From positions 2,604,001-2,668,000 of the forward strand of contig CDRNST010000015.1 in NCBI GenBank assembly GCA_977016875.1: 64,000 bases of DNA. Direction: 5' to 3'. Below, in pieces: positions 11,968 through 49,108 of this stretch. The notes under the pieces were generated by a model. It saw only the letters and a list, made by a program, of their open reading frames with translations. It did no database searches and had not been told where the DNA came from. Made by a program: the position numbers and the translations under genes. Source of the DNA: Pavona decussata. Lineage: Eukaryota. The number at the start of each line of letters is the position of its first letter. Position 1 is the stretch's first letter.

Positions 11968-12254
11968 TAACAACTATTCTACGAGCGCGCGTTGGGTATG
12001 AGATGATAAATAGCCAAACGAGGTGCGTAGCGCCAAGTTGGCCATAATCATCTCATATTCAACAAGCGCGGGTGGAATAATTGTTTCATTAAAAACAATC
12101 AAGAAATTTTGCTATACTTTGCTGGTTTCGCTTTTAAGAACAACCAGAAGACAATTTAATGGTCTCGGGCATGGTATAATGACCCATATATCTTGGCCTC
12201 TAAGCCAATCAAATCCCTGGAATTACATTATACAATAATCCAGTTTTTAATAAT
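11968..12254 (+). mobile_element. Hairpin-headed non-autonomous repeat (family A)
   Basis: ~115-bp 5' hairpin (11970-12086) capped by GA-GGTGC-GTA-GCGCC; AGCCAATCA at 12203; 3' end is an imperfect inverted copy of the sequence just after the hairpin. Confidence 0.7.
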
Positions 12255-13266
12255 ATGGTTTAACCTTAGACTCTTAAGTTCACAGGTTAAGATGACATGT
12301 ATTAATGGTCGTCAAGGTTGTTTCATTCACTGTAAGCTCCCTTCCTAACAGACACGATACGACCAATATTTGGCATCCGTTACCAATTTCATGAAAGGAA
12401 AATACAAGTCCCGCTTTAATCAAGATTTTAATCCTGTATGCCCCGTAATAACTGGGTATTCGTGTTAGCAAGGTGTTCGCAGTCGAAAGTTATTTGTAGG
12501 AAGAGAGATTACTATACTATCATAGACTTAATATTTACAAGATCGGCTATTTTGATGGCCATCAAAAAACAATGATAGAATTCAACCAAATGTTGACCAA
12601 GTGGAGGCATTTCCCATATGGCAGACAAACAGGACTGCAGTCACGTTTACAAAGTTTGAAAAAGGGGCATAATAAGAATGCTTTGATCAATCACGAAACA
12701 AACCGTTAGCAAGCATGAAAAACTGAATTATTCAAAACTAAATACTGTATGAAAATTCAGTGCATGAAATCGTAGCAGCTGAATTTACCAAGAACTAATT
12801 TTCCAATTAAGCAAAATTTAACAGCTGATAGGTAAGTACTGATAACGTATATATTAAAAATATATTCTAAATTTTCCTATCAGGAAAAGAAAACGCTAGA
12901 TTTCAAATTAATGTCCAGGTTATATAAAACACGCTAAAAATCTAAGAGTGATAAAAAAGTCTGTCTCTCGGCGTTAAACAGGCTCTTTGCGAAATACCGC
13001 AACTTATCAGATCTTTGATTAGAAGAAATCAAAGCTTCTGTAACTTTGCTTTCCAGTAGAACCGGTCGGGCTTAATGCTTAAATAACTTTTCCAGTAAGC
13101 AAGAGGCTTGGGTATCTCTCACTCAGACTGCGCACCAGCCAGCAAATTACAAGTGTTGTCACTTCATCTTGGTGAGCAAAAACTTCATAGGGGTTGGATC
13201 CCGACCTCAGTAAAGTATACTCTACTCTAGAGTAATGCAATCCTCTCAAGTTTGTTCCAACAGTCC

Positions 13267-14186
13267 TTAGGTTATAGTGTCTGGCAAACCATCAGTAAGG
13301 TACGTTTTAGTGGAACCAGTCAAAGAGGAAATTCTTTTTTGTGCAAGGAACGACTTGTTGAAGCTAGCCTCCATTCTCACGGTGATATCCTTGAATACTT
13401 CGACCGACTCCCCGTGTTCTTCCAGAACGCGTCGCACCAATGCTTTCAGTAGATCGAAGCAGTGAATAAGTTGCCCTGCTCTCACAGGAATATCCATGTC
13501 TCTCAACGCATCTGAGTTTGGTTGCGCAATTTTGAAAGGCTTTTCCAAAGAAGACACAAACTCCGATAACTGGGCTAACGGGAGGTATGTCTTTCCGTCG
13601 TGAACAAACGTTCCCCACGTAATGTAGTAGCTGTCGAAGTTCTCCTTGGTGATGCAGAAATCCTCGATTTCGTGAGCGCGGTTCACGTTCTCAAGAATGA
13701 TAGCAATGTACATGTTAACAATTACAAGGAAGACGACTATGATATAGCTGGCCAAGTAAAGAACAGCACTGAACGAGCCACAGTTACCATTGGGAAGACT
13801 CAGGTAGGTGGGATCGCAATCTGGAGGCTGCAGCATCAACGCATCCATGATGTCATTCCATCCAGAGCCAGTAGCTAGGCGAAACAGCAGCAGAAGTGCA
13901 GTACCAAACGTTTCGAAGTTTACAGTGTCATTTAAATCGCCTTCTCGTTTTACATTTCCGAAAGCTGACATGCCAATGATCGCATAGATAAATATGACCA
14001 TGAATAGCAGGGTGCCAATGTTGAAGAGGGCTGGTAACGAGATCATGAGAGCCCACAAGAGCTGACGTATTCCCTTGGCAAACTCCACCAGCCTTAGCAG
14101 CCTGGCAATTCTGAAGATTCGTAGGACGCGAAGAAGACTGGGACTAACTGCACCTTCGTTTGCATTGAATTCGTCGAGCATCACAT
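13267..14186 (-). CDS. Nav2: Nav2 exon 23: DIV S4-S6, pore loop, C-terminus
   Basis: tcaatag|AT GTG ATG; [16 protein letters not shown]; [11 protein letters not shown]; [11 protein letters not shown]; stop TAA 13267. Confidence 0.95.
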
Positions 14187-17100
14187 CTATTGAAGCAAAT
14201 CAGAGAGTTAAATTCCTAGTATGGTGGAATTTGAAAGTTTAAATCTTTCACTTCCAAAAGGGGAAAGCAAGAAAAACAATAACATACTTCGTTTTGCATA
14301 TTATCAGGATAAAAAAGGCCGAAACGAATTAAGTTCGGCTTCTGTACAACAACTTTCATCTGAATGGCCACAGAACCACCTAGCTCAGCATGACAAACAG
14401 TACAACAGGATACTATTTCTGAATAGCTTTCATTTGGATCGCCCAACGACTCCAATTTTAGAACGATTTCCACAATAAGCCGTACCATAAGGAACGAGTG
14501 ACTTCCTCTAGATTGTCACTCTTCAGGATTTTATCCACAGGCTCAAAAATCGGAGCCACCTTGTACAGCAATAAACAGACAGAAAATGTTTGTTGAATGC
14601 ATTCATTTGAATGGTAAAACTTTAGCGATACGGTTTCATCCAAGGACTGAAGACTTCAAATACTAAAGAAAATGTCAGTGAAATGGTTCATTGTCGAACA
14701 GGATATCTCTGAAAAGTTAAGTTTTTTTTTTTTTTTTCTACACATTTCTATTCTTACACCAAGTGAACTTTCTGGGTGTTTTTTTGCAAGAAACCAAAAT
14801 AAATGGAAATACCCATTGGAATGAATGTCACAACCTAGTGACGGTTGCCAAAGCCCTTAACCTAAGTTGTTTTAACTAACTGAGAGGTTTTTCGATTGGG
14901 TGTCGCGTAATCAAGATGGCCAAGATGGCGAGATGGTCAACCTTTGCCAAGTTACAATGTAGATGTGCGTGTACAACAGACGTAAACGGCACAACGAAGC
15001 AAGATTCGAAGCAAATGAAAGTAAATGGCGTCACGTCGAGAAAATGCGTGCGAGCAACACACGTTCTTTCAGTTCTAATGTGTAGCCAAAGTGGAGCAAA
15101 TTAATAAACCAGTCAGAGAGAGTAGAAGAGTAACACTCGTTACTAAAAACCGCTCTTTTAACAAGTTTACATACCCACAAGAGAGCTGATAACGATGATG
15201 AAGTCGAACACATTCCATGCTTTCTTGAAATAATGCATCCTCAACGTCATAATCTTGACAATGGCCTCCAACAGAAATATTCCAGTGAAAACGAAATTGC
15301 AAATGCGTGAACATTGGTCAAGGAAGGTTGTAGTTTTTTTTCAATGGATTACATGATTGGTAAAATCTGTATGTATACTGTTTTCATGACAATTGACCTA
15401 TTTTCATGATAAACGGCACAAGGGGTCCTATCAACTTCTCACGCATTTGAACAGGTAAGCATAACATAGTGAAAGGATATGAAGGGCGTCAGTGACTTGT
15501 TCTGATTGTCCGTGATGTTGTATCGTCATCAATACCATGTTGCACATGATTACTGTCAGAATAGCGATCTCAAACTTATCTCCTGTTACCACGTCATATA
15601 ACACGCCACAAAGTCGTTCCTGGAAATCAAACGTTACAGGAAGATCAACTACAATACTCAAGACAGTAATACTACATATGCTAAAAGAACAACAAATGGT
15701 GACTCCACGTTCCAAATTTAGTTGCATTTTCTTGTCCACTTGATTTATGGCAGCTGGACTTATGCTAATGTCAACTGGCTGCCTGGCTCTGCTAGCCCCT
15801 ATGGTTATTCCAGGCAGCCAGTACTCTTCACGAAAATTGTGATAAACAATTCATAAGAAATCTGCCCATTCTGAGCCAGTCACAAGTTTTTCTGTAACTG
15901 TTCATGTGTTGAGTTTCCATGGCAACTATAGAAAACGTGCACGATCAGGTTGGGCTCACATGCACGTTCTCTTAACGCCCGTTTAAACGGTTTCAACGTT
16001 TGACCAACATTCGTTCAACAAAAGTTGAACGGATGTTGGGCAAATGTTGGACAAATGTTGAACGGAGTGTTCAAACGGCTTCAACACCATTCAACATTTT
16101 CGAGAACAAAGCAAATGTTGTATGGATGTTGAATTAAAATTGAAACCGATTGAAATTTGATTCAACACGCTTTCAACAAGCTTTCAACATTTTTTAAGCT
16201 TTCAGCAATGTTGGACGACCTGTTCAAACGCCCCCAACACTTGGTTCAACAAAGTGTTGAACGCGTGTTGAAGAAAATGTTGAAACCCTTGAAATGGGCC
16301 TTTACATACTCATATAAGAAAAAGATTCGCATACAACAAAGTCGGTAATGACATTCCATATCAACGAAAGAATTAATCTCCTTGGTTGTTTTCAGAACCA
16401 TTCTACGTGTTTGTTCATTTTGCAATACTTTGTCAAATTTTTGGTACTCCTGAAGTTTTCCTTTTTTTTTTTATTTAAACATATTTTATTGTCGAAGCTT
16501 GCCCTAAGAGGAAAAAAAAAACTCATCGAGAGGGCTCACTTCGAAATAACATTAAATTGAAAAATCAACATTAAATAATAATTAGTAAAAGCGGCGGCAA
16601 AATTAACAAAAAGCAGCATTAAGCAATGCTAACAGGTGGAAAATACACATCTAGGTACTTTTATAAAATCTCTTCGATTCAGATATAAAAGACTGGACAT
16701 GAAAAAATAGATAATTATTTTGTTTAGGAGAAAGTAACTGTTATCCAAGGCGACAGTTTTGTTACCTGTGTTAGTTTGAGTAACGTAATCTCTTTGTGTC
16801 CCTGAAGAAATAGTGAATTTCAAAATGTTTTTGCTTAGTTCATGTACGGCTTTCTCACAGGCCCTCACAGTCAATTTGTTTCGATGACGTTTCCGAGACG
16901 TACGGCTGGGAAAAGCCTCGCTTTTCCCTCTTACTCGTGACCCAAAACGGATTGATCAAGTTGAAAGACAGAGAAATGCCCAGGAACTAGACAACAAATG
17001 TTTATGATAATAGGGATTGGAGTCTTTGAATTACTTTATACCTGTGGACGAATCTGTCTGGTGGGTGGTTTTTTTCGAGCCGCTTCTTTGAGAAAGTTGA

Positions 17101-19725
17101 CCCACTTTCTCTGTGTGTCAGTCAATAGCATTCCCATGCTGTTAAGCTCTTCGTACTACAACAGAAAAGCCATGAGAGAAAAGTTAGCAGTGAGACCTGG
17201 CATTACTGTGGGATCCTGCATGCGCGGTATCTTTCAGGAAAATATGGGAGAAAAAAGACCAGGGCAAGTCTAAAATCCTTCTGACGTTTTCTTAGTCCCT
17301 CTTGACCAACTAAAAAGATATTGCGTTCCATTTCTGTACTAAATATTTCAGGACTACTGTAGACAATACATTCCAAGCATAAACAAGCATTGTTACTCGT
17401 CATCTCTTATTTTATTTTCGCCTAATGGTTCGAAAAAAATAAACACGGACGCGTAAAATTACCCACTGTACAACACAGCGTTCCGCCAAATAACCTTTTC
17501 TTATTGCTGAACCATGTGTACTCTGATGTCCTTACTGCATGTTATTAAGATTCGGTTGAGAATATTCTGAAGAAAGCATCAGAAATATTACAGCTCACCT
17601 TCTTCTTTAAAGTGTTGAAGTTATCAATAATGACTCCAACAAACAGATTCAGGACAAAAAATGATCCCACGACGATGAAGGCAATGAAGAACAAGTACGC
17701 CACCAACTTGTTCTCATACTTTGGTTGCAAATCCACCTAAGAGAAATAATGCAAAATCACACGTACTTTTGTGAGGGGGGTGTTTCTTTTGCGCCTCAAA
17801 TTGAAGAACTTATACAAAAAGACGTATATTGGCTGGGCTCATCGAATACTAACTGGAAATACGTGACTCGCAAAACCTCGCAAAGCTAGGGCTGGGTGGA
17901 CAATTTACTTCTACCTTGGTTGTACTGCCTGTGATATTCCTAATAAACGTTTTACACCAATGTAATAATTTTCGATAATTTTCCTGATAATCCAGCCCTA
18001 TCTGTAAACGGTATTGCAGTCCTTTTCTTTATTCGGGCATCAGATTTTATTGGAGAGAATGCGCTGCTCCAGACAGTTGAAAATATGCAGCAAGTATTCT
18101 CACAAGGGGTGTGCTAATATTTACCTCAGTAGAATCAACAGAATCCTGCATAACTTCCATCCATCCTTCAAAGGTCGCCTTAAAAAAATTATTCATTGTA
18201 ATGTAAAATTCGTCCTTAGGGAAAACGTCCTGTTACAGGTATTACTACAATGGATTCTACACCTGTACTGGTGAAACCTGCTTCACACTGCAAAACGAAC
18301 TGCAATCGTCGTCAAAACTCTGTTAAATGTATATTTCAATTACGTTTACAATGAAAGTATCAGTCGTTTTGCCTCATAAAAGATCTATCCGTTCCCGAAG
18401 AAAAACGTTCTTTGGCCAGGAAAATCTGCTTGATTGAGGAAACCAACATTGTGTTGAGGGGGACGGGTTTGATCTATGCAATCTAAGAAAGGTGCTACTG
18501 TCCCACGACGTTTCTTAACGATTATTGAGCTTAGCGCCATGTTTGAGTGCGTATTTACAATTTTTATTTGGTGACCCAGTTTTGTGGTCATTTGCATGTA
18601 CATACGATAAAAACGTGTCCATTCCAAAACGTACTTACTTTACTTACTTTCTGGTTATTTTGTAACTTGAAATTTTAATTGTTGATTTTAAAAAGCCAAG
18701 AATCGTCAGAAAAATTCCTCATAAGTTTCAAATGTACCCTAGTAATTTCTTTCTCTTGTTTTTTTCCTCCGACGTCTGAGGTTATAACTATGAGTAAAAG
18801 TCCAGTTTAGCGGAAGACAATGGTCTCCTCGAAAATAATTATTTTCCTGACCAAATTTTAAAGGTGTTTACTATTGTATTGCTATTGTAAAGAGCAAATT
18901 TGTCTAACTGGCAAATCAACTCACCACTTGCATGAGTGCAAGAAACCCAGCAAACACGTTATCAAATGTAACTTTGGAGTTTACCCAGCGATACTTGTCA
19001 GGGTGCCCAAGGCATTCTGCTTTGTTCGAAACAACATTTGCGGGTAACGGTTCATTGTTTTCATCCACGCACTTGTAAAACTTTCCAGCAAAGAGATGGA
19101 CCCCAAGAATGCTGAATATCAGCCAGAAGAGAAGAGAAACTAACAGCACATTTCCAATGCCTGGAATAGCAGCAAACAGTGCGTTCACAACTACCTATTG
19201 CGGGGAAAGACATACTGGTGGTTAATTATTTGTCAATGTTGACTATCAAAACTTTCTCTTAGGTCATTTCCAAATTGCCTTTAGCAGCTTTTCCAAAGAC
19301 TGGTGACGGATCATTTCCAGATGAATAGTTTTGGGCATTTGGTCTCCCTTCAGTGAGACGACTGAAGACCTTTAGAATGGCCCATTTTGCTTGTTTTAAT
19401 TATAAATGTTATCCTAAATTTATGTATAGGTAAAATAAATCACAAAATATACCGTCGACGTCAGCGACTAATTACAACGTCTTTTACAAATTAAGAGCAA
19501 GTCCAATAGTAAATTAGCTTGAAAGTTCACATGTAGCATGCCACTCTTTTCCAGCCAGTTAATGTTTTATGGTAACATAATGCATCGCTTTTTAATTCAA
19601 AACGTCTCAGTTTAACTGTTTTTCACCGCACTAATAGTCTTTAAATGTGTAAGTTGAGTTGCGAAAGTACAAAGATGATAATAATTCGACAAAAGTAGGC
19701 TACTCTTGAAGGGAAAATGGGGAAG

Positions 19726-19756
<31 letters not shown>

Positions 19757-22700: not shown

Positions 22701-25700
22701 GACAATATCCTACAATCCCGAGATGACAGTTTATTCACGCATATCCAAGTTGTAGGAGAAAGCCGGGCACAGAATGTCATTAAGAGACTCAAGTTTTTTG
22801 TGCTAAAAAGTTGTCACAATAGCGAGGCAGCACTTTGTGTTCACAACTCGATCCTGAGGAGAGAGCGGGGCTTAAGAAACAAACTCGGTTTAATTTTTCT
22901 TCCCTAAGCAAAGCATCAATATGACATTCAAGTTATTCTTGGTCTGCTAACCTTTACAGGGTATGTCATAAGATTCCTTCCTATGATTCGTGCCCTCTGC
23001 TTCGCATATGGCCAGTGAGCCCCTGGCGTTTAGATCTGAGCAATGGCTACTCTCCAATACCTGTAGTTCATACAGACGAAAAGGCTCGCGGTATTTGGCC
23101 ACAAACAGGCGGGACTTGCGGGTACGGAATAGCTTCTTCGTGGAACATCTGGATGGACCTTCTACAGACCGCACCTCATCGGATGGATTGTTATCGGTCT
23201 CTCTGAAGTCAAACGCATTTACCAGAAGTGCCACAAACAAGTTGAGAACCTGCAAAATGTGATGAACAAAACGAGCAGAGAGTCAGTTCGATGGTCACAA
23301 AAAAAGGAAATCGTTACTGTAACCAATCAACCAGCGCAATGGCCATGCCAGGCAAGCCATTAATTAACTAATGAACATAAGTAAACAAATAGGCGGATCG
23401 ATTGATCAACCGATCGGTCAGTCAGTGAATATATCTATCCAAAAGAAGGTTAGTTTCTTAAGAAACCGTGCCGCTGCCTTTAGAGAGATTAGAGCGCTGA
23501 AAATCAAATAGCCTAAAGTTCCTTACTCAGTTTACACACCAGCGATTGCTGGCGACTTTTAAGAATCACAGAATCGCATTTCCTGACAATCGAAAGGGTT
23601 GGGAAAAAATTGCCTTCGCAGAAGGGGGTGGCACACCTGACGATTCCCACCAATCACAGCAACGAGCGAACAAAATCACCTGGTATCTCGCTGGCTTGTT
23701 AGTTTACATTTCATGGCGTTTGTCAAAACCAAGAGGCTATTGTAATTTTTAGAAAAACTACCGTGATAAAATAGTTTTAAATCTGTCTAACAGATCATGC
23801 AATTAAACAAGCAAACAAAATATTTTTTTATAATCAATCTATTGACTCATCTTTCGGTAAAGCGGTCTCTGGTTCTATGTTTCATGGAAGCAAACAGGAA
23901 ATATATTTACAATCAATCAATTAATCAATCAATCAGCCAGTTTATCAATCAAAGAAGCAACCACTCAAGCAAGCAATCGTTAACCAATCAACCAATTAGT
24001 AAATACTCTCTTGTTAAAGCGGTTACCGGTTATAAAACATTCAGTAATCAATCTGTAGTCACCAACACTACTCACAATGAAATTTCCAACAACTAGAACG
24101 GTCAGGAAGAACAGTATGGCCTTGGCAGCACTTGTGGCCCTCATGCAATCCCAGAGGGGCTCGATCCACTCCCCACACAATACTCTGAACACCATCATGA
24201 TAGCGTGCCAGAAGTCATTGAAGTTCCAGCGCGGCACACCATCTTCTCCAAACTTCTCCTCCGTGTAAGCCTTTCCAAATACCTTTATTCCCAGTACAGC
24301 GAAAATGTACATAACGACACTGAGTATGAGAGTGATATTGCCAACAGGCCCAACGCTTCTAGCTATGGCCTTCATCAGTCTCTCCATGGTCTTCCAGGAT
24401 TTAGCCAAACATAAAACTCGTATCTATCAAGAACAAAATGTAACCGTTTTGTTGTGCAAATGAGAGCTCGTCTTTCGTATGAAGTCAAAGGTGAAATAAG
24501 TATGGTTAATCAAACGGTGACGTGAGAAAATTGGAAATTTCAATCACTTTTTTCAAATTTCGAATAATTTAATTTCTCGAGCCTTTTTTAATGCTGAAAT
24601 TTCGGGCTAAACTAAAAAAGTAATTTGTCATCCATTATATCAGTCGTTCAGTCGTTCCTCCATCGTTACGTGGAGTCTTACTCCACGCGCTACCCCAGAT
24701 TGTTTTGTTAAACTACGTTTTCGTTAATCGACTGCAAGACATGTTCCAGTTTTTTCTGCTTCTCAGCTGTAAAGTGGTGAGTAAAAAGCTAGTAATCTTT
24801 TGTCTTTTATTTTTTTCCATTGGTGAGTAAGCTACCGTTTCAGAAGTGCTAACATTCAACTGAAAATGTCTCGTTTGTTTTCGTGGAAGTTTTCGAGGAA
24901 CTTTATTGAGTTATGCGATTTTCTTTCCTCACCAAAAGTTAATACCTTCAATTTTGAATTCAATCACGTAAATGTAAATATAAATTTAATGAAATTCATA
25001 ACCTTTATTTGGCAGGAAAAAATTAAAATATTGCGAGACCCTCCAGTAAGACTAAGAGGAATTAATGGTTTTATAATTATGCGTATTCTATAAATCTTCA
25101 AGGGCACACTTTAATTGGAGTCTCACTCTGTTGTGTGTCCCTCGCCACTGTATTATCTTTTCTTGGTTGGTGAAAGCTTTAATAAATAATGTCCAAGACA
25201 AACGTACGTCAGTGCATATTTTAAAAGCCAAATAAAAGTTTTTTTCGCGTATATTTTCTTACTAGCTTACCAGTCTTAACGTTCTAAAAACGCTTAGTCC
25301 CTCGGCAGATTTATAAAAGTATCCCAACAAGCTCCCTGACACTACGGTCGTATCAAACACGTTCCAACGGCTGTGGATAAACGCCATCGGTCCCATGGCA
25401 ACGAAGCGAAACACAATCTCTGCTGCAAACAGCATCGTGAACACCTGTATTAAGCAAATTCAAACACAAAGAACTTAAAGTTCGATTCCCATACACAGTC
25501 GCTGTCTTTGTCACAAGTGAGGGTTCCAAATTTTGCTTCCTATTTCCAAAGGTAACTGAACATTTCTTCTCAAGCAAATTAATAATTCAAGAGAAGACCC
25601 AAAAGGAAATCGCTTCCGTGAAGTAAATTTGGAAATTTCATCTTAATTATCATAAAATGTGGTGAACGTTTGCTTTCTTAACAATTACTAATGGTTTTAA

Positions 25701-28700
25701 AAGCTACATCAAACACTCGGAAAAGTGTTTTATCCGATTCCCAAAAGCCACGAAATTGATTAAATAAAAACTCGGCTGCTCCTCGTTTTTTTAATCCGTT
25801 TTTCGGTGTTTGAAAATGGTTGCCAGAAGTTGCCGCAAATTTATATTTAAATAGGTTTAGTTCTCACTTTAATTCATATTGAAGGATCTTAAATGAGGGA
25901 ACAGTAAGACTAAAAATAAAATACATTAGACTCTCTCAAGGTTTGTTTAAACATGGATTTTTTTTTGCTTTTTCAGCGTTACAAGAAGTAAGAACAACGT
26001 GGTATAGTTTAATCTTTCGCTTTAGGCTCGTAGAAATATCTCAAAGAAACTTGAATATTGAATAGTTGAATAACCTCCCTTAAACTGCGCCAGCAAGGTT
26101 CGACACAGTTCTTGATCGGATTGGTGAACCAATTACATAAAATTACTCTACAGAGGATGTAATGTTTGTTTGTATTTTAATTTACTAGATAGGGATTTAT
26201 CCATCAGATAAAGTTAGCTGCACTTTCAATAATTACTGATACAGAGTGTTTTGTTACTATAAGCCAAAATGTATATGATTACAGTTTCTGAGTCGTTTTG
26301 GGTATAAAATAGCGTCGTTGACTGGGAATGCTTTTGATCAAATCGGTCCGCATAAAGATCGCATATATTTTGGCCTTAAAAAAGAGATCAATCTTTTTCG
26401 GAAACCGCTACCCTAAATTCCAGGTAGTATCCCCCAATAGGAAGGCAACTGGGGCAGTGACGATGTGTTACTCACCAAATTCACGTAGTCTAAGACGTGC
26501 CGAAAGTCCGGATTAATCCCATGGTGGTACAGTGCCAGCACGACTGTGTTCAGGAGTATCAGCACCACAATCACAGCATCGAAGGTAGAATGAGAGGTTA
26601 TGACAACCATACACTTTTTTATCCTTTTCCAGCATGATACCATATGCAAAACAGCATTGGACTTTAAAAGACTCGTTTTATTTCCCCTTCTTAGTGTGCA
26701 ACCAGGTAAGAGGCAGTGACTTAATTTGGCGTGTTGTTTATCTGCGTGTTCTTTGGAGGACGAACCCTCGATTGAGTCGCTGTTGCCCACGGCGTCAGGC
26801 TTAGGTGGAGGTGGCTTGCTTCCATCCAAAGGAATTAGACGTTTCAGCGTTTCCTCGTCGGCTTGATATGAAGCTCCAGTTCGCCGCAGATGATTCCTCT
26901 TTTCTCTCTGTGAATTTTAAGTAACAAAGGCAAATGGTAAGAGACTACTGATAGAGACCATAAGAACCGAGAGAGGCTATTTCCATGAAATAAATGAATC
27001 ATGCGGTCATACATTCTGAGAACTTAGTCAAGTTTACATGATATTCAATGCAACTGATGAACTCGAACACTCTTATCCATCGACCCTTATCGCCCATAGA
27101 AATGTTACAGAATCTTACCTACTACACATAAAGGTTTCTCTATTATCAACAAGTTAATCTAGTGAATTGGGATCTGGCTGCTGCCCTTGTTTGAGTTTCG
27201 AGTGGGTTGTTTATGGTATCAGCGGAATGCAAAAATTCTGCCCGAGATGGAAGCTACAATCATGAACAAAATCCTGGCTGTCCCAACCTTCCCCAACTTT
27301 GGATGTGGAGCCCGTGTGTCCAGAATGCAGAGTCTGTGTGCCCAAAATGTTTCTTACATGCCAACAACGATTTTGGGGAGGAAGGGAAACACTCTACCTA
27401 AACGGGATAATTGCCGTTTAATCCGAGGAGAGGTCGAATATTCATGTTAGTATGGATAACTTAAGCTTTGTCCCAAGGACTTTTGCCCGGTATCGCCTGA
27501 ATAGATTGTTGTCAAAGTGTTAATGTTGTCCAAGAATGACTAAACTTTCACTATCTTAGTACAAAACCAACAAATTCACTTTATAATTTCGGATTTCTAT
27601 AAGGATTCTCATCGACTACCTCTTTCTCCTCTGAACACAGCTCCAGCTCATAAGACAGATACACCACGGCAAGAACCAGGTTCATCAGATAAAAGGAACA
27701 AAAGAATACTCCGATAACAAAATACGGAACGTACAGGGCTCCAGAGGACCTGATGATCTAAAGGCAGCAAATGGATTAATTAAATTAATTCAAATCTTAC
27801 CATCTCAACAAAATAGTAGATTGATTAACTTCACCTGTTTGTAACAATTTTTTGCTCTCGCCACTACGCCATCCCAGCACCCCAACCCTCCTCCACACCC
27901 AAAATTAAACGAAAAACAATCGGTCCATACCCCAGAAGTCCTCACGATCTAAACAGTACAATGCCAAATGAATTAAGAGAAAGTTTACCGGTAGTAATGA
28001 TAAGGTAGATCTGTACCGATCCCTGTTTATTCGATTTTGAGTTAATTGGAATTCTACACTGGGGAGCCGAATGAGCACAGAACGTTTCACCCATTTCAAA
28101 TCCCAGATTGGCATAACATGTGGGATAAAACAGTTCTTGGTTCACGTCCTTGCACACAGGGAATGCTCTCCGGATCTTTCAGTTTCTCTCCCTCTGCAAA
28201 GATCAACATTTTCAAATTTAGGTTTAAATTTCAATTTGATTTGTGTGTAGCTGAGGACCGCCCCAAAAGCCACCTGCGAGATAAATTACTTTCCTTCCTA
28301 AATATCACCGATTTATTTATAATGATGAATCCCAATAGTTGGGTTGTGACACTCTTTGAGAAGAGGAACGTAGAGAGGTAAGCCAACGGGAGGGCTTTTT
28401 TTAAGTAGGAGGATTCATTCTTTTCTCCTGAGCAAATTGAACTGCAATAAAAACTAATTGGCACAATTCAGATGTTAGGACGGCTCTATTGTGTCAATTG
28501 CACAATGAAACTTAAATTGATACATGGCCAATGAACATATCAAGCTGACTAAGGAAATAGTGGCACTCTCGTTGGTTGGGTTACCTTGTCGTAAAGGTTC
28601 TCCCAGTAATCCATCGTCAGTATTTGTAGAGCCATAACCAGTGACCATCCAATGTTGTCAAACGTCGTGTAACCATTGTCGGGGTTTTCACCAGCGTTCG

Positions 28701-34076: not shown

Positions 34077-35369
34077 TTCTATGTCTTCAGTGTCAAACCG
34101 AACCCTTTTTGATGAAGATTCTTCACCTCTCAAAGTAACTGCCTTTTCCTTTTCAGTAGTCCCCTTAATCAGGGTATTTTTGGGATTTTTCCCTGTAATC
34201 GGATTGGAAAGTAGCTCTCAGAAAGAAAGCCTCTGATATGGATCGATGGTAAACATCACGCTGTTAGTATACTGTTAATCAAACGTACATTTTCCCCTAC
34301 TGATGAAACGTTCTTAAATGAATCCAGTCTGGTCATTATTGACTAGTTTCGGGATAAGGGGCTAAACACGATTTGCAATAGCTTTTGCAGCTATGTACGC
34401 AACTTGCGTGAACTTCCTTTCAAGTTTCAGGCTTTCTTGCAGAAAGAAAGGAATTTCAAACCACTACGTCTACGATATCGGTACATCGCTCTGCTGGGAT
34501 CGGAGCTGGTCAATTTATGAATTCCTATTATACTCGTAGAAAAGAAGAGATGAAACGATGAATTTCATAGATTTCACCTCCGATTAAAAATTAGTATCAC
34601 AAACACTGCAAGTGTGAACAAACTTGAAAATCTACAGTAATGAGGTGAGAAATATCAGAGCTACATCATTATTTCTAAAATCGTGTCATGCAGATAGGCA
34701 AGGGAAACTAACAGCCGTCACACTTGACCGAATATATCCTCTTTCCTATGGACTGAGTTCTGACTTGATCAATTAAGTGTCCAGCATTATCAATGTTATC
34801 TGATCACCAATCTATAATCGAGCCTAAAAATGTACTAAGAACATGTAAAGAAAGAAAACTTAAAGAGGAAACCTAGGATAGAGAGAAGAACTGAAGCCGT
34901 TACGTAATAAAAATTAATGTGACTGAAACCACATTTCATGTTAAAGCAAAAAAAAAAAAGAAAGAAAAAAAAAAAGAAAAGAAAAAAATCCAACCTGTTA
35001 GTCATCACAGTGAAGAAATATAGTTGCTTATTTGACTGAGCAAGATGTTCGGGGTTAATTCACTTTTTAACCGCTCAATCGCGAAGTTCATCACGTGTCG
35101 AAACATTCAAAGATTCCAGTATCAGGAAAACACACCGAAAGGAAACGAGGATTTTTTCGTAGATGTATTCTATAAACCATTGAATAGACGTTGAACATTT
35201 TGTACAAGTCTGAATATTTGAAAACAAAACAGTATAAATGTTCAGTACTTAGAGTAACTGAAACCATCTGAAGCGAGCTCAATACTCCAACAACAGCAAA
35301 ACAAAAACTTCACTTCATAGCTTTGATGTCTGCCGATAGTCACAGCACGCGCACGATTTCCATTAGCCG

Positions 35370-35622
35370 AATTAAAATCTGGTACCAAAAAAATAATCTG
35401 AAGGTGAGAAAATTTGTAACGAGAACCTGAAACTTCATTAGTGAAGAGGTAAGACAAATATGAGCCATGTTTCATAACTTTCATGTATGCCGTACGATTT
35501 CCATGAATTAAAATTTGGTACCAAAAAAATAATCGGAAAGTGAGAATAATTTTAACGAGACGCTGAAACTTAATTACTGAAGAAGTAAGACAAATCTGAG
35601 CCATATTTTCCCTAACTCATGT
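35370..35622. repeat. Two-copy ~136-bp tandem duplication
   Basis: aattaaaat.tggtaccaaaaaaataatc...gtaagacaaat.tgagccat at 35370 and 35506. Confidence 0.85.
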
Positions 35623-38154: not shown

Positions 38155-38301
38155 TCCTCGCGAAGCGAGGTTAATAAATTTGTCGGGCCGAGCCGGCCCG
38201 AGCGGAGCTAAGCCGCGCGAATTCGAGCGAAAGATATAATTATATATATGCGTTATTGACCAAGCGTGAGGTCAAGATGGCTGGATATTGGCCAAGTTCG
38301 T

Positions 38302-38348
<47 letters not shown>

Positions 38349-38355
38349 CAAAAAA

Positions 38356-38390
<35 letters not shown>

Positions 38391-39266
38391 AAGCTTGGTC
38401 AATAAAGGATTTATTATATGGCTTTACCTTCAAGTTAAAACTACGACAACAAAACAAAACAGGACATGAAACTGCTCTACTCGGAAAGAAATTCTTCATA
38501 GCCGGCCGGTGCAAGCCGGATTTATTTTTAGTGCATTTTTGGATTAGCATGTAATCGTGGAAAACAAGGAATCCTAAATTATCTTAGGATTAAGATTTTC
38601 GCAAGAGCGGGAAGATTTGAATCGAATCCGTCAAACTCTCCATTTTAGCCGATCGCGCGGTGGCGTAAATAATAAACATTTTTACACAGTTTTCGGCTTC
38701 CAATCATTAATTCTTGAATGAAACAATAGATTTTGAGATTATATGCAAACATAAGCCGAAAAAAAAAACGGGTGAATCAGAAAACTGGGCGAAACTTTGA
38801 CAAGATTTTGTTGTTTACAACAAGCAAGGCGCGGCTAAATTAGAAACGTGAGCTTCTTCGGCGAACTTGAAAAAAATACTTTTCTGAACTGCTCTAAACA
38901 CTCAACGCAACTTCCATTACGCTATGATTTAAATACAACCATTGCAAACCTATAGAACTTATCAATTTGGCACTCGACTTGAGACCATAAGTTTTACAAA
39001 ATCAACTCTATCTAAAATACTACACGCAGAGCAACTCACCGATTCAACTCACATTCATTGTAGCTGAAACAAAATTTTCACTACACTAGGACGATTCCAT
39101 TCTCTTTCCTTTCCTTTAGGTAAATGTTGAGAGAGTTTACCGAACTTTTTAGTGAGCGTTTACCCCCAAAACAACGAGAAAATCGAAGAAAAGATTGCAT
39201 TGTTGTTGGGATTAAACTTTCGAAGCCAAGCGGACGGGCAACGGGTAATCCCGAGCGGGCAAGATA

Positions 39267-39297
<31 letters not shown>

Positions 39298-39863
39298 CAG
39301 CGCAGGATTTGACTCATCTTGCCCGCTCGCGGAGCCAGCCATATAATAAATATGGTTATATCTTTGAAGGTGTCCGCACTTGTGCCTAGCAACAGTGAAA
39401 AACAAAGTATGAATGACGTCAGCCTGTCTGGCGTCGTCTGGAGCAAAATTTGCATACATCGGAAAAAAATATGCGTGCATGATCAAATTTCAACTGCAAT
39501 GTTCATCAATATTCACTGGATACAAAACTATCTCTCCAGAATCTTTTCCCTTACTTTTAGAAATCTTTTTTGTGAAAGATTGCATTGAAGAAATTACACG
39601 TTTTGTGACCGCGGTAAAATTATTTTCCGTGGGAAATAAATTCATCGAGCACGACAGCGCTGCACGCCCGTTGTACATTACGTCACGTCAGAAATAGATC
39701 AGTTTCAACCGCAAACTAGCCCGTGGAACTACGAAAAGACCATACTCATCAAAAAAAAATCCTATGCACCTTTTAATCTCCTCATTTGATGCTACAATAC
39801 GAGAAAAGAGGGCTTTCCACCCAGCCCCAGCTTCGCGAGGTTTTGCGAGTCACGTATTTCTAG
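38155..39863 (+). mobile_element. Non-autonomous Helitron/Helentron-like element
   Basis: Starts tcctcgcgaagcgagg, has the inverted subterminal copy gcttcgcgagg (39830-39840), ends CTAG followed by TTTT, no TSD. The 3' terminus recurs reverse-complemented at about 17852-17900. Confidence 0.55.
38240..39350 (+). mobile_element. Hairpin-headed non-autonomous repeat (family B)
   Basis: ~150-bp 5' hairpin (38255-38405) capped by GA-GAC-GAA-GTC-GA; second hairpin 39249-39288; AGCCAATCA at 39289; tttattata / tataataaa inverted pair. Confidence 0.75.
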
Positions 39864-42800: not shown

Positions 42801-43229
42801 AATGTTTAAAATTCTAAAACCAAAAGCAAAATAATTCTGTGAACAATACAAACCTATTATAGAGCTTTTCACGAACATGATGGCAGAGGACGGAAACAAA
42901 ATCCTTTAGTTTGTTTCCTCAGTGATGACCAGTCTGAATAAATCAACTTTACCAACGGTTTATGAAAGATTGAAGCAACGTTTGAAGAAAGAAAAGTTCG
43001 TTCAACTCTCCACGCCTTCTACCTGCTTGCGGGCTCATAACTTATTGATGCAAGCAGGGTATTGAGTATCTTATCAAAGCATTAGTACTATTTTATAACT
43101 TAGTATCCTCCCCTTCGTCTCTGACGTTTATCCTCAGGAATGCCATTGTACACATTTAAATTGCTTTCGAAAATTTCTCATTTCAAAACAAATATGAGAG
43201 CACTGGAATGGGCTGCTCAACTGAGAACC

Positions 43230-43730
43230 TGATTAGAATGACCATACTATCAGATTCGCCTACAGAATCACCCTGTACAGTACAACACGGCAGCACCACA
43301 GGAAACTCAGTACTGCTCAATAGCTTTCATTTGAATAGTCACATTTTAGGAATTCGTCCAAGGACTCAAAAGTTAGAACCACCTTGAACAGCATAATAAA
43401 CACGACCACAGGAATGTGCTGCTCAGTAGCTTTCATTTGAATGGTCACACTTTAAGAATTCGTCCACGGAATCAAAAGTTAGAACCACCTTGAACAGCAT
43501 AATAAACAGGACCACAGGAATGTACTGCTCAGTAGCTTTCATTTGAATGCTCACACTTTAAGAATTCGTCCACGAAATCAAAAGTTAGAACCACCTTGGA
43601 CAGCACAATAAACAGGACCACAGGAATGTAATGCTCAGTAGCTTTCATTTGAATGGCCACACATTAGAATTTCCTCTACAGACTCAATAATTAGAACCAC
43701 CTTGTAAAGCATAATAAACAGGACCACAAG
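43230..43730. repeat. 106-bp minisatellite, about 4.5 copies
   Basis: tagctttcatttgaat at 43321, 43427, 43533, 43639 (period 106); diverged copies at about 14420-14650, 11130 and 61255-61320. Confidence 0.9.
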
Positions 43731-44431
43731 CGGATCACTTTCATCCTTATAGTTTCCTTAAACCTGTTCGCATGTGTGATGACTTAGTGCATTTACTCAA
43801 ACCTTTAATCCCCAATATCATCAATACTTGTTGGGAGAATTTGGTTTAAAATTAAGACTTTTCGTCTCTGGTGATCATTTTCTTTTGTTCTCCTTTAATC
43901 TTTATTCTTTATGTTTGATAACGCTGAGTGACATTCTTAGGAGAGATTGGCTACTGATCACTACTGGGGTTTAAAGTGATACTTTGAGAATTCCAAAGAC
44001 AGCACAGAACAAATTAAAGTTAATTCCATTCACAATTAGCGCGCGCATGTTGAAAACATGGTGTGTTTTCCTTGATGCTCCGAACTTTACATGAGCCGAA
44101 CCTAATCATTTGGTTCGGCGCATGTAAAGATCGACGTATGAATCAATTAGGATCGACAGATTTGTATTTGGGTCGACCCGCCGTTCTATTCGACTGCGCC
44201 AGTCGAATAGAACGGCAAAAGTTCGACTTCGATTCAGACGTCGAACTTTTCATGTGCCAAACCAAATGCGTACGTTACGTATAAATTATATAAATTATAT
44301 CTATCCCAGAGGTCTGTGTATTCCATCGACTTGGCATGTGCGCAAAGGACTTCATTCTGAACAAGATGGCGGGAAAAGAGGAATGTGCTTGTTCTTCTTG
44401 TTTCGAAACAACTGAATATACTTGCCTGAGA

Positions 44432-45600
44432 TGCGAAAGATTAAAAGAAAAATCTATTCTTGAAGTGCACGCGCACTTCAAACCGACAGAAACTTTCCAA
44501 TACAGGCTATATCAAAAGCGAAGCGTCAAGACTTCTTAGAACAAAATCTTCAAAAACAACATTTGAAGAAAACATTTCTCTATTCAAACAGAGATTAAGC
44601 AACAGAGGTTACCTCGATAACCTTATAAATAAAACTCTTTCAGAAGTCAACCTCCGCGAAAGAATGTCGGCACTACAAAACAAACTAAAAACCCGCAAAA
44701 ACATTTTGAGGTTTGTTATGGAATATCGCCCTTCTGTGTCTAGCCTAAAACAATTCAGATGAGTAAATACAGGAGCTATAATCAGGGATGGAGACCGTAA
44801 GCGTGGGGTCCACGCGTCCCCGTGAATTGCACCAAAAAAATCTAGTTTTAGAAAAAAATTGCCTCCCCCCTTTTTACGTCATAAACCCGCGTGAATACAC
44901 GCAAATTTGCTTGGGGCTACTACCTTATATGTGACACGGAAAGCAGCTAAGAAAAAATTCACTAAAGATAAAAAAGTCCTTACCTGTCTGAGTACATGTC
45001 CGTCACCGCGTAGAGTGTAAGCTTTTTTCATTCATTCAACAGTAGCAACGCACGCAGCGCCACCGTTTTGGCGCCTTTTTGACTTAACTGTGAGAGTCAT
45101 GTGATCAATAGGCCGCTTATTCCAACTTTTCCCGTCTTCTTTCAATTGTTACCTTTTCTTTGTGAGAGTCTAATTCCTTAAATGTGGGCACTGAGGAGAT
45201 ATTCCCTGGCAGAATTTTAAAATTTGGACGCCATTTTGAACGGGTAGACAAAAATTTCAATTTCTCCACGCGTGATCCTGGCCGTTTACACGCGTGCGCG
45301 CACGCGCGTATGGCGCAATTTTTTTTCTAAAAATATATTTTTTGGTACAACACATGGGGACAAGCCCACAAGTCAAAATGTCATCTCGTTACGGTCTCCA
45401 TCCCTGATTATGGCTCCTGGTAAATGACACTTGATAGAAAATCAGCCTCTGCTAAGGGAGACCTACAAAGACCCTTCCAGTTACTTTCGTACAGAAAAGG
45501 GAGATCTTTGAAAGACGTACTCGTAAGAGCAAATTAGCTTTGAAGGTCATATTCTTCCTATCTCGACCAGTAGGAGCCGTGGTTGGCCTGTCTTTATTAC
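44432..45600 (+). mobile_element. Penelope-like retroelement 3' fragment (RT C-terminal region), decayed and split by an insertion
   Basis: HFKPTETFQY...GYIKSEASRLLRT.SSKTTFEENISLFKQRLSNRGY; resumes after 45419 with HLIENQPLLRE...KGRSLKDVLVRA. Confidence 0.75.
44770..45419. mobile_element. 650-bp TIR element with 7-bp TSD
   Basis: TIR caggagctataatcagggatggagaccgtaa / ttacggtctccatccctgattatggctcctg; TSD gtaaata / gtaaatg (one mismatch). Confidence 0.8.
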
Positions 45601-46300
45601 TTTACCAAACAAGCTCTTCCATGTCAGAATTCATCTTTCCCGCCATTTTGAATCTTGTTGAGTAAAAACAACAGCCGCTGACCACGAAAATCTACTTTCT
45701 CATTTTAGCTTTAATTAAGTTCGACTTCGGTTACGTTTGACGTCTGAATCAACTGCCGAACTTAATTATTTGGGTCGACCTTAATAGGTATTAGGTTCGG
45801 CTCATGTCAGTAAAGTTCGACGTATGAACCGGGCCTAAGTCCAGCAAAAAACTAAAAAGGTTATTTTCTCCTAAACAAGCATCGCGACCTATCTTTTTTA
45901 TCTCGTTATTTTAATTTAGCTAGTATACTCTTTATGTTTGCAAACTTTTGACGACAGAAAAATGAGTTATTGCCAGAAATACGGGCTTGCCCACCGCACT
46001 CACAGGCATAAAACAGTGATACTGCGAGAAACGAATTGGGTGGATACTGCTTCATATTGTGCTTCCCTGCCAAGAAATGTATCTTTAATTGTCGATTGTT
46101 CTTCATACATTCTTTGTATAACGTTTTTTGTAAGTTCTGCTTTATCTGTGTAACTTCTGTTACCAACAGACATGGCTATTACTGATCAAATAAACTCATT
46201 TCTGGAAGCAAATATTGCAAGCGATTATGGGGTAAATTAAGTGGATCGTAGGTCTTTCGCAAACACGGTGACCTATCGGTGACGGTGACCTATCTTTTTT

Positions 46301-46604
46301 TAATTAGATTATGAGTTCGAGATTTCTATCGCGTGATAGCTGATGAGGGCGCAGCCCGAATCAGCTATTACGCATAGAAATCGAGAGCGAATAATCTAAT
46401 TGTTTTAGTATAAATCTACAAGTCGGTCAAAACTAAACAAGTAAATTATCTATTTCCTCATCGCAGACACTTCGAAAACGCAACGAATCGGCCGCCATTT
46501 TGTTGAAAACTGCTACTCACTATCTATCACAGAATAGATAGCGAGTAGCGTAGCCAATCAGAGAACGGCATTCGTGATAGAACAATAGTAGATTTATACT
46601 AAAA
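46301..46604 (+). mobile_element. Hairpin-headed non-autonomous repeat (family C), copy 1
   Basis: Hairpin 46301-46402 capped by GA-GGGC-GCA-GCCC-GA; AGCCAATCA at 46552; ttttagtataaatctac / gtagatttatactaaaa inverted pair. Confidence 0.8.
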
Positions 46605-48803
46605 CGTAATAGTGATCAACCACAGAAAGTTTTAGGAAATTTTCACGACGACTTTTCTTTCGCGAGAATCACCTTAACGCAATTTAAACAATGGGAACTT
46701 ATTTTTGTCGCATTTCCGTCTAAGTCTTTAAGTTCTCACGATCTGAAACCAGTAAAAGAGTGTTGATGATGGTAAATTTTCAGCTATACTAGCTCGCTAG
46801 TGGATACCGGCACCGTAAAGGTAATGAGTTCGTATCAAATGTCTTATTTGCAATACAAGTGCGAATCACCTTCAATCACTTTTTCGTACCTTGTACACAT
46901 AGTATGCCGTGATTTCATTAAAGAAGCTGAAAAATCGAAATGTTGCTGATTTTTCGCCGTTTTGCTACGTTTTTTACTGTGACCAGTGTTCGCGCTGACT
47001 GTTCACAACAGTTGAACGTTTTAGTTCTTACAACCTTGAAGAATATCGTCAATTCTCTTCATTTGATGCGGTCATAAGCGACCTTCCAGCTCTTTGCGGT
47101 CATACACGACCTTATATTTCGCTCAGATTTGTGGCGTTAAATGACCTACATTCGCACCGTCTGTGGTCACAGGTGACCTATTTCTTAAACTATATGTGGT
47201 CAAAGAGAAACCAACTTCCCGCCATTTGTGAATAACGTTTTCTAACCACATTACTGCAGGTGTTTTAATGAACGGCACGTTCCTGATTACAGTTACACCT
47301 TTTCTAGTATATGTCTCATTCCAACCGCGTGGCGTAGAATATAACCAGTTCAAGCTACAAATAAAAATCGAATTTGCAGGCACCATGTTCGACTTTTATG
47401 CCGTTCATCTCCCAAAGTGAAGGCAGAATTCGACTCTCGTCAGTGTAATTTTACCTGCGTTAACTAGCGTAAATTTACGTGCATAAACAAAATTTATAGA
47501 GAATAATAAATCACATGAAATCAAGTTCAACTTCTGCCGCGGACGTAAGCTGTCCATACATTTTCTCTAGTTTGATTTACGCGCGTAAAATTAAGCGACT
47601 GTGCAAATCCATCTTTAAGTGTATTCCTTGTGGTTTGTGTGGCAATTGAGCTGATTTATTTCATATTTGAAGCGGTTGAACAGTGAACGTAAAAATTGAG
47701 CTAGCCAGTAACAATTGATAACTTGAGCCGTCATTGTACACACGAAAGTGCTTAAGTCATTCGGGTTAGCAATGGACCTTCGAGTCGTTAGGATATCGAG
47801 TCAGTGGGATTGAACTATGTTATACAACTGTCTCACCTGTTGCTTGATACTGTGTCAACAATCTTCTGCTAATTTAATAAAAAAAATTGTGTTTTAATGA
47901 AGCGGTGGGCAGAAGGGAAGTTCTGCTTCGTGAAATTGGTCTGAAATGGTTCCTGTTTTTTTTTTTTTTTTCTTTTCTTTTTTTTTTTTAACTCAATAAT
48001 AGCCGACAGGTAGTGGTCACTCAATCTTCTTCTTTTCATTCTTTTTTGCTTTTTCTTTGTTTGTTTTGTGTTTTTCGTCCCAGCACAGGTGGAATCACAG
48101 GTTTTTTTTATTGCCAAGAATTCCACTCCATTAAACACCGTCTGAAACGACCATTTTCAGATTTTTAATTTTTTTCGTTTTTGAAAATCCGAGTGATCCG
48201 GATTCCTTGGATTTCATGTTCCTCCTTCCCTGTTTGTCTTCACTCTGAATCTACTTAGTTTTATTGTAAATTGTATAAATGCCGCAATCTGATTGGCTTT
48301 GCTCAGTCATAGATCACAGACTACGTCATGATGTGGCGAAACAGCGACAGCCGGCAAAATTCTAGCTTGAAGTCATTTCCATCACCGGGTTCTTTTCAGT
48401 TTTAAAGAGTAACTGTTAAATTAGGCGAGAAACTCTTGCTGTCTTTGTCCGGCACATAGCAAAATAACTTGCAAAACGTTGCCTGTTTTGAACTTTGGCT
48501 CCTTACGTGAACGTCAACGAGTCACACCGCACAATAAAGTCGTATGCGTTTCACATACGGGCCAATCGTAACGCGCATAGAATCTTCGTTACTGTATAAT
48601 ATGTGATAGCCAGCCACGAGTAACGAAAAGGTCGGTGCTCGACGCATGAAAAACAGCACATCGGAAACAGTTCAGCGGAATATTAACAGTGACAGATTTA
48701 TGCTAAAACAATTCTATTACTGTTTAGATCTTCCTTTCTATACGTGATAGATAATTCGCGATGCGTCTTCAACGACTTCCGATCGTGAACGCAGTCTAAA
48801 TAT

Positions 48804-49108
48804 TTTTAGTATAAATCTACTAGTGTTCTATCACGAATGCCGTTCTCTGATTGGCTACGCTACTCGCTATCTATTCTGTGATAGATAGTGAGTAGCGATT
48901 TTCAACAAAATGGCGCCCGCTTCGTCACGTTTTTGAAGTGTCTGCGATGAGGAAATAGATAATTTACTTGTTTAGTTTTGAACGACTAGTAGATTTATAC
49001 TAAAACAATTAGATTATTCGCTCTCGATTTCTATGCGTGATAGTTGATTCGGGCTTCGCCCTCATCAACTATCACGCGATAGAAATCTCGAGCTCATAAT
49101 CTAATTGT
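48804..49108 (-). mobile_element. Hairpin-headed repeat family C, copy 2 (inverted)
   Basis: Close reverse complement of 46301-46604. Confidence 0.8.

Follow-up and report, generated by a model that had tools for sequence, protein, structure and literature searches.

Four repeat families in a 64,000-nucleotide (nt) stretch of the coral Pavona decussata (contig CDRNST010000015.1 of assembly GCA_977016875.1, positions 2,604,001 to 2,668,000; hereafter the window) share a long DNA hairpin with a strand-specific tip. Judging from their sequence, they are gene-less Cryptons that resemble miniature inverted-repeat transposable elements (MITEs), and not HUH nuclease or Helitron elements. The reading we favour, with a probability of roughly 0.6, is that these non-autonomous cnidarian Cryptons presumably depend for their movement on trans-acting tyrosine recombinases containing QRICH1, DUF3504 and integrase domains, and that their folded GA strand, i.e., the element strand carrying GA/GA internal loops, is recombined by one-strand exchange. 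A preliminary description of the window had drawn attention to five hairpins with the apex GA-stem-GNA-stem-GA and had suggested mobilisation through a structured intermediate by either a Crypton-type tyrosine recombinase or an HUH enzyme. All five hairpins are present in the sequence. The four families behind them are here named A, B, C and D, and their layout is always read along the GA strand. In the 602-Mb source assembly, a first-look search returned 3,461 (A), 1,829 (B), 1,692 (C) and 1,558 (D) candidate copies. Sampled genome loci carry L-numbers, as do the metagenome contigs L111, L116, L120 and L128; C104 stands for L097 and L103 merged.

The hairpin tip and the common layout of the elements

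The GA/GA mismatch and GNA loop, previously described as fixed, are perfect in the consensus apices of families A (30 copies; CAAC GA GGCGC GTA GCGCC GA GTTG), C (21 copies; GGACC GA GAC GAA GTC GA GGTCC) and D (30 copies; TGAT GA GGGC GCA GCCC GA ATCA). In family B, the window copy and the L013 copy are mutated at different stem bases, which implies an original apex CGAG GC GCA GC CGAG. Given this implied original and the perfect consensus of A, the imperfect apices at 12020 and 25772 of the window belong to decayed copies. Chance does not account for the hairpins, as the window holds three exact motifs with five of six outer-stem positions paired, compared with 0.01 on average (at most 1) in 200 dinucleotide-shuffled sequences. 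In a 328-kb sample, consisting of the window and loci mostly fetched with families A, C and D, GA/GNA/GA was found in 82 of the 114 hairpins of such shape. The genome-wide search proposed earlier, run with the pattern CGAG-N2-4-GNA-N2-4-CGAG, gave 16,012 matches compared with 5,568 for the reversed control, and fully complementary stems of 19 distinct types were present in 57 of the first 100 matches listed (hand count). Six more families, E to J, came to light in the chance flanks of sampled loci (the related hairpins of L046 and L058 being counted as one).

Across the 12 families that could be tabulated, outer-stem positions are Watson-Crick paired in 10-12 families with three to four pair types per position, the triloop is closed by a C-G pair in every case, and GA/GA and C(GNA)G are constant. 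The covariation asserted before, with varying stems, preserved pairing and a fixed tip, is thus borne out. Similarity of the arms between families is approximately random, except between C and its coding relative. The first ten nucleotides, TTAACAATTA, are common to A, D and E, so the notion of four families with unrelated arms stands except for this shared start. Folding yielded two to four two-by-two internal loops per stem; in eleven hairpins these comprise 16 GA/GA, three GC/AA, two AA/GA and one GA/CA, and the main apical loops are all GCA, GAA or GTA. The GA/GA mismatch had been assigned to the cap, where it is indeed found, but it is not confined to it and recurs two to four times along each stem, every hairpin having one to three GA/GA loops in addition to that of the apex. 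A second type of mismatch, 5'-GC-3' opposite 5'-AA-3', occurs as a two-by-two loop in the unrelated families A, H and J, which may point to a mismatch code with more than one letter.

Complete elements are available for families A, C, D and E, the last found in L052 with all parts; layout and boundaries were built from the same 30 (A), 21 (C) and 30 (D) copies. A left flank xTAN is followed by a 7-nt spacer (TTAACAA; ATATGCG in C), a hairpin of 100-170 nt beginning with TTAx and, directly 3' of it, a stretch of 12-25 nt reverse-complementary to the 3' end of the element, which verifies the inverted relationship noticed earlier. After the interior come an inverted repeat with a spacer of 6-9 nt, the motif (T)AGCCAATCA and, 42-51 nt further on, the 3' end xTAA; the motif had been singled out in the three complete families of the window and was recovered in each (Table 1). 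Neither target-site duplications (TSDs) nor terminal inverted repeats (TIRs) were found when the flanks of 80 copies were compared and D copies nested in known D sequence were inspected, in agreement with the preliminary description. More than 10,000 copies with this strand-specific terminal architecture are present in the coral genome.

In silico joining of the two ends lets the stem run across the joint for 11-25 bp, with just the two initial bases (TT) or a small bubble left unpaired, and in a natural head-to-tail pair of D elements in L029 the stem likewise crosses the joint. Each family repeats its own 8-mers in the 3' subterminal region as well as in the arms of the hairpin or the complement next to it, e.g., CGTGATAG in D, CAAGATGG in C and GGTCCGTA in the coding element L085 described below, and these are likely binding sites for a protein.

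The window elements are listed in Table 1. Their five hairpins lie in intergenic or intronic DNA around a gene for a Nav2-type channel, elements being located in an intron and upstream of this sodium-channel gene. Several copies depart from their families. The 5' part of the B palindrome seems, on comparison with the L013 copy, truncated or diverged, and the C copy lacks about 52 bp at 38588-38589 that 20 other copies have. The first D copy reads TTTTT at 46297-46301, where 29 other copies have TTAAC, and its left flank is without the usual xTAN, whereas its 3' junction is normal; this odd 5' end may be due to a 5' truncation or a local slip in the T run.

Table 1. Elements of families A to D in the window, with positions counted from its first letter, and coding elements from elsewhere in the genome
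Feature	Position	Strand	Remarks
Family A element	11967..12253	+	287 bp without coding sequence, older copy (about 87% identity to the others); left flank ATAC
A, 5' spacer	11967-11973	+	TTAACAA
A, hairpin	11969-12085	+	
A, apex	12020-12036	+	GA GGTGC GTA GCGCC AA
A, internal complement of 3' end	12086-12100	+	
A, CCAAT motif	12203-12211	+	AGCCAATCA
A, 3' end	12244-12253	+	TTTTTAATAA; right flank TATGGTT, then TAA
Family B element	25567..25817	-	about 250 bp, old copy 77-79% identical to others, in an intron of the Nav2 channel gene
B, apex of hairpin near 5' end	25771-25785	-	CGAG GA GCA GC CGAG, one inner-stem mismatch
Family C element	38246..39349	+	1,104 bp, without long open reading frame; left flank ATAT
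C, 5' spacer	38246-38252	+	ATATGCG
C, hairpin	~38253-38408	+	
C, apex	38322-38334	+	GA GAC GAA GTC GA
C, internal complement	38411-38424	+	TTTATTATATGGCT
C, inverted repeat	39250-39287	+	16 bp, 6-nt spacer
C, CCAAT motif	39289-39297	+	AGCCAATCA
C, 3' end	39340-39349	+	CATATAATAA; right flank ATATGGT, then TAT
Family D element	46297..46602	+	306 bp, young, copies 96-97% alike
D, hairpin	46299-46404	+	two further GA/GA loops
D, apex	46345-46359	+	GA GGGC GCA GCCC GA
D, internal complement	46405-46419	+	TTAGTATAAATCTAC
D, inverted repeat	46512-46549	+	16 bp, 6-nt spacer
D, CCAAT motif	46552-46560	+	AGCCAATCA
D, 3' arm	46588-46602	+	GTAGATTTATACTAA; right flank AACGTAA, then TAG
Second D element, inverted	48806..49110	-	flanks TTAT (5' side) and AAATATT, then TAG (3' side)
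Second D, 5' end	49110-49100	-	TTAACAATTAG
Second D, apex	49063-49049	-	GA GGGC GAA GCCC GA
Second D, CCAAT motif	48850-48858	-	TGATTGGCT, reverse complement of AGCCAATCA
Second D, 3' end	48806	-	
Coding element L085			2.1 kb; 453-residue reading frame opposite the GA strand; QRICH1 (2e-11), DUF3504 (8e-26), Phage_integrase (2e-10)
Coding element C104			1.95 kb; 415-residue antisense reading frame; QRICH1, DUF3504, Phage_integrase
Coding element L094			layout as in L085 and C104; 475-residue reading frame on the strand opposite the GA strand; QRICH1, DUF3504, Phage_integrase

Recombinase-encoding relatives

Long members with the same layout, which the preliminary description had recommended looking for, were found in the DNA around tyrosine-recombinase matches in the genome. 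Three such elements, two of which (L085 and C104) could be delimited at about 2 kb, each encode a recombinase with QRICH1, DUF3504 and Phage_integrase domains, and in each this is the sole open reading frame (ORF) of at least 150 residues. The question of the enzyme is thereby settled for a tyrosine recombinase, in line with the first of the two options raised earlier. An alignment of ten recombinase homologues shows R205, H339, R342 and Y374 to be invariant. L085 has the left flank xTAT, the spacer ATATATG and then TTATTGAAC; its hairpin contains four GA/GA loops and the apex GA GCC GAA GGC GA, and behind the hairpin come an internal complement, AGCCAATTA and the end CTATATAATAA. These ends were confirmed by three further copies. 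C104 is of the TTAACAA type, like A, D and E, with three GA/GA loops, the apex GA GAC GAA GTC GA, a complement starting with TTAGTATAATTTCTC, then ACCAATCAG and an end closing with ATTATACTAA.

The kinship with the gene-less families is visible at the ends: the first 183 nt of C are 78% identical to the 5' end of L085, the first 116 nt of E are 74% identical to C104, and A, D and E have in common with C104 both TTAACAATTA and a complement of the TTAGTATA type. By these similarities, the window families are non-autonomous relatives but not direct deletion derivatives of the coding copies sampled. The ORFs of the loci sampled first contained no recombinase remnants, and no co-location of hairpins with recombinase or Rep places was seen among the matches listed.

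The motif AGCCAATCA is a CCAAT box that, in the coding elements, precedes the antisense recombinase gene by 150-350 nt; most likely it belongs to the promoter of this gene and was handed down to the short derivatives. An outward promoter, formed by the CCAAT box and the TATA-like 3' end and reading out of the element or across a circle joint, was rejected, because the box is upstream of the antisense gene and probably serves its promoter. RNA-library contigs likewise lend no support to such read-out, since none of them reaches the unique DNA next to the two D copies, which is weak negative evidence.

Two other recombinase types in the genome, a DIRS-type gene for ALOG plus integrase (L092) and a gene for an integrase alone (L093), are without a GA hairpin, suggesting that the hairpin is specific to the QRICH1/DUF3504 type. 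The former (L092:656-1921) encodes a 422-residue protein with ALOG and integrase domains, and is followed at L092:2456-2552 by a different hairpin with 32-bp arms and no GA/GA loops. Directly upstream of the 398-residue integrase-only ORF, tandem repeats of roughly 75-90 bp occupy L093:1-660.

Outside this genome, the L085 protein has 353 relatives at E <1e-10, including proteins of Acropora, Oculina, Actinostola and Paramuricea. Scanning metagenome contigs with an alignment of ten proteins gave 80 loci with homologues 35-77% identical to the query. Where a strong hairpin lies downstream of the gene, the anti-gene strand carries 12 GA/GA loops and one TC/TC loop in total, and the apical loops are often GCA or GAA. 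The contig L111, with 47% protein identity, displays the whole layout, CCAATCA included: flank ATAC, spacer ATATATG, TTATTGG, the apex GA GGCC GCA GGCC GA, an internal complement, AACCAATCAG and the matching 3' end. The strict motif is present in only 5 of the 80 loci, many contigs stopping at or before the hairpin, and the support across samples is real but partial. The recombinase-gene contigs L116, L120 and L128 end within 40 nt of a hairpin apex; long palindromes thus seem to break short-read assemblies, and the structure would then be hidden in many data sets.

Further observations concern the surroundings of the sampled hairpins. About 1.6 kb downstream of a family J hairpin, an ORF or exon for an EF-hand (calmodulin-like) protein of an ordinary host gene occupies L033:2653-3111. 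The family F hairpin with its flanks occurs in four copies of 100% identity on contig C364 (at 86221, 225356, 333455 and 440629), three of them about 107 kb apart and one about 6.6 kb from a Helitron Rep match, which looks like a recent segmental duplication.

Target sites and mode of insertion

Logos of the flanks of 80 copies from families A, C and D show TA at positions -3/-2 in 25-29 of 30 (A), 18 of 21 (C) and 28-29 of 29 (D) copies, and again at +8/+9 in 24 of 30 (A), 14-17 of 21 (C) and all 29 (D) copies. The target is thus a short palindrome, xTAW-N6-WTAx, that is cut one base after the first TA. Family D, which ends in CTAA, prefers CTA..TAG, and families A and C, both ending in ATAA, prefer ATA..TAT; the terminal motif (CTAA or ATAA) matches the target motif in the left flank (CTAW or ATAW), and likewise in the L085 copies. 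Several A copies (flanks of L035, L043 and L060) lie within (ATA)n microsatellites, consistent with the ATA..TAT preference, and such repeats might attract insertions. Of special interest are the 9-10 of 29 D copies that sit inside the loop of another D copy's 16-bp inverted repeat, at CTATCTAT^CACAGAATAGATAG, since this nesting reveals precise insertion without duplication and a built-in landing site. This target sequence was used in both orientations (L020, L028). The arrangement of spacers is one-sided: the element spacer is on the left and the target spacer on the right in 79 of the 80 insertions, the exception being the first window D copy with its anomalous 5' end, and the target spacer was on the left in none.

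In recombination by tyrosine recombinases, cleavage of each strand takes place at the spacer's 5' edge. Here the crossover is found on the GA strand at the left spacer edge, so that the GA strand would be the one exchanged. Together, the one-sided spacers, the internal complement and the asymmetry of GA/GA against TC/TC fit the recombination of a folded single strand. In such a mechanism, the GA strand would fold, either while single-stranded or within a cruciform, into a duplex recombination site, which the internal complement of the joined ends could help to build from one strand. The GA/GA loops and the GNA cap would be stable on this strand, with TC/TC and TNC poor on the other, and could in this way mark the strand to be folded. 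The recombinase would then bind the family-specific repeated motifs and exchange only the GA strand with a double-stranded target, and replication would complete the insertion. For Cryptons as a class of animal DNA transposons, integration as a folded single strand, selected by tandem sheared GA pairs and C(GNA)G, directed to a palindromic target and finished by replication, is put forward tentatively, as a proposal to which we give slightly less than even odds. In Chlamydomonas, the end of an active Crypton is the same as its target motif, and the element increases in number although it excises cleanly (bioRxiv 10.1101/2022.05.23.493040), in agreement with a replicative step; if the proposal is true, it would also explain such copy gain of active Cryptons.

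Several observations weigh against the favoured reading. The structured single-stranded or cruciform intermediate suggested earlier fits the anatomy, i.e., the strand asymmetry, the complement at the joint and the 79 one-strand insertions, but it remains something we infer: no single-stranded or circular form was seen, joined ends were met with only as genomic tandem copies such as that in L029, and the RNA-library contig rows listed contained no clear circle joint. In a nearest-neighbour DNA model, which has no terms for sheared GA pairs or GNA triloops, the GA strand is only 0.3-5 kcal/mol more stable than its complement in 10 of 11 hairpins and slightly less stable in one. The apex of the coding element L094 has a GA/AA loop and a palindromic tip without GNA, so that the cap appears common, not obligatory. 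None of the elements recovered was a master with more than 90% identity to the ends of families A to D, although no search was aimed at one. Many metagenome contigs with sufficient downstream DNA have no strong hairpin; they may represent decayed elements, or assemblies interrupted at the palindrome. Finally, the match between the first base of the target and the last bases of the element is based on D compared with A and C only.

The alternative that survives best is that Cryptons move as double-stranded circles by two-strand exchange, the hairpin being an inverted array of binding sites or a cruciform accessory and the GA/GA loops tolerated spacers. The link to the recombinase is shown under this view as well, the targets resemble classical core sites with inverted half-sites around a 6-nt spacer, each family has a perfect inverted repeat with a 6-nt spacer, and the computed difference in stability between the strands is little. 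Given unlike spacers, however, about half of the insertions should have the target spacer on the left, where none of the 80 does. Furthermore, the anti-gene bias of GA/GA, seen in the diverged metagenome relatives (12 against 1) and in 16 of 22 cases in this genome, is unexpected for a symmetric duplex, and a duplex model leaves the internal complement of the joint without a function. We consider this explanation unlikely, though it deserves attention beside one-strand exchange.

Less probable still is that the hairpin serves a step other than recombination, either priming or starting complementary-strand synthesis on a single-stranded copy in the style of parvoviruses and single-stranded phages or acting as RNA 3' structure of the antisense transcript. 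Stable GNA mini-hairpins do occur at single-stranded phage origins, the hairpin is located 370-560 nt downstream of the recombinase stop codon, and D-family sequence appears in RNA-library contigs. On the other hand, in all families the crossover point falls within the extended stem, by which the hairpin is linked to recombination, and mismatches in the mRNA sense would be UC/UC. The RNA contigs may also stem from DNA or read-through, and the unique DNA beside both window D copies had no contigs in three RNA libraries, a weak negative, as contigs only were available for comparison. We thus regard this role as improbable.

Very improbable is mobilisation by an HUH nuclease (Helitron, Helentron or IS200/IS605 type) that would nick a small hairpin in its loop at each junction. 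The layout, with a subterminal inverted repeat, a terminal hairpin and no TSD, does mirror that of Helentrons (PMC4067079), one and the same tetranucleotide precedes both cleavage points and the genome has at least 86 Helitron Rep matches. However, a tyrosine recombinase is the only product encoded by the three coding elements, insertion does not take place at T^T, the logos showing xTAN^ and N7-TA, and the one Helitron family examined ends quite differently (ATGCC-AGTATA-GGCAT-CTTGTTT), in a short hairpin of another kind that lacks the features described here. The HUH option of the preliminary description is accordingly not supported, and on the same grounds a Helentron/HINE reading of the mirror-image layout was dropped. 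The Helitron-like family in question is young, with an intact 2,588-residue ORF and three copies 99.7% alike (3' ends at L081:5072, L082:4839 and L083:4807, minus strand), and has neither a CTRR end nor a GA hairpin.

Relation to known systems

Helentrons and the related HINE elements (DINE-1-like; PMC4067079) are nonetheless similar in anatomy, combining subterminal inverted repeats, a hairpin at one end, the lack of a TSD and abundant short non-coding derivatives. They differ in encoding Rep and helicase, inserting between T and T and having palindromes of 5-10 bp, whereas the elements described here have a tyrosine recombinase, a hairpin of 100-170 nt and the target xTAW-N6-WTAx.

Closer is the likeness to Cryptons, in particular the animal CryptonA group with its single recombinase gene containing DUF3504 and QRICH1 (PMC3212892), domains also found in vertebrate Crypton-derived genes (PMC3212892). 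Cryptons, too, have no TIRs and no TSD, their non-autonomous copies far outnumber the autonomous ones, and a short motif at one terminus is shared with the target: CryptonF-1_cRei, e.g., has CACCG at its end and CAYCG as its target (PMC3212892). In the 2011 survey, animal Cryptons were reported to be without terminal repeats of any kind (PMC3212892), and our literature searches returned no description of a Crypton terminal hairpin, an internal joint complement or the GA/GA and GNA features; the palindromic target xTAW-N6-WTAx likewise seems undescribed. New in this study are furthermore the target logos with their family preference, the self-nesting, the count of one-strand insertions and the coding element of the TTAACAA type, as well as the specificity of the hairpin to QRICH1/DUF3504 recombinases and the GA/TC strand count in metagenome relatives. 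For Cryptons, whose mode of movement is poorly understood, a conserved, strand-specific terminal architecture offers testable statements on the strand, the cut site, the target and the critical bases. It also provides a signature for annotation, consisting of xTAN, a 7-nt spacer, a GA/GA hairpin with GNA cap, CCAATCA and the end xTAA, which is missed by tools relying on TIRs or TSDs.

With regard to the tip itself, d(GNA) loops closed by a C-G pair are very stable (PMC3201870, PMC13037366), and the C(GNA)G cap with this favourable closing pair, present in all 12 families, corresponds to the DNA mini-hairpins d(GCGNAGC) of these reports. In the same manner, CGAG/CGAG is a context known to form tandem sheared G.A pairs (PMC10085684). 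While those mini-hairpins were model oligonucleotides or single loci, the motifs here form a conserved code at more than 10,000 transposon-end copies.

A further parallel can be drawn with bacteria. The integron attC sites and attP(+) of the CTX phage are folded single strands used by bacterial tyrosine recombinases, with one strand exchanged and replication resolving the product. The coral elements would fit this pattern in their stem across the joint, their GA/GA bias towards one strand and their insertions of the one-strand type, a likeness by anatomy only. Those systems are bacterial, and the recombinases are unrelated in sequence beyond the catalytic fold. The markers differ as well, being extrahelical bases or a central bubble in attC and attP(+), but tandem GA pairs and a GNA cap in the coral. 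If the folded-strand reading is true, the Cryptons described in this study would represent a eukaryotic counterpart of integron cassettes and of CTX phage integration.

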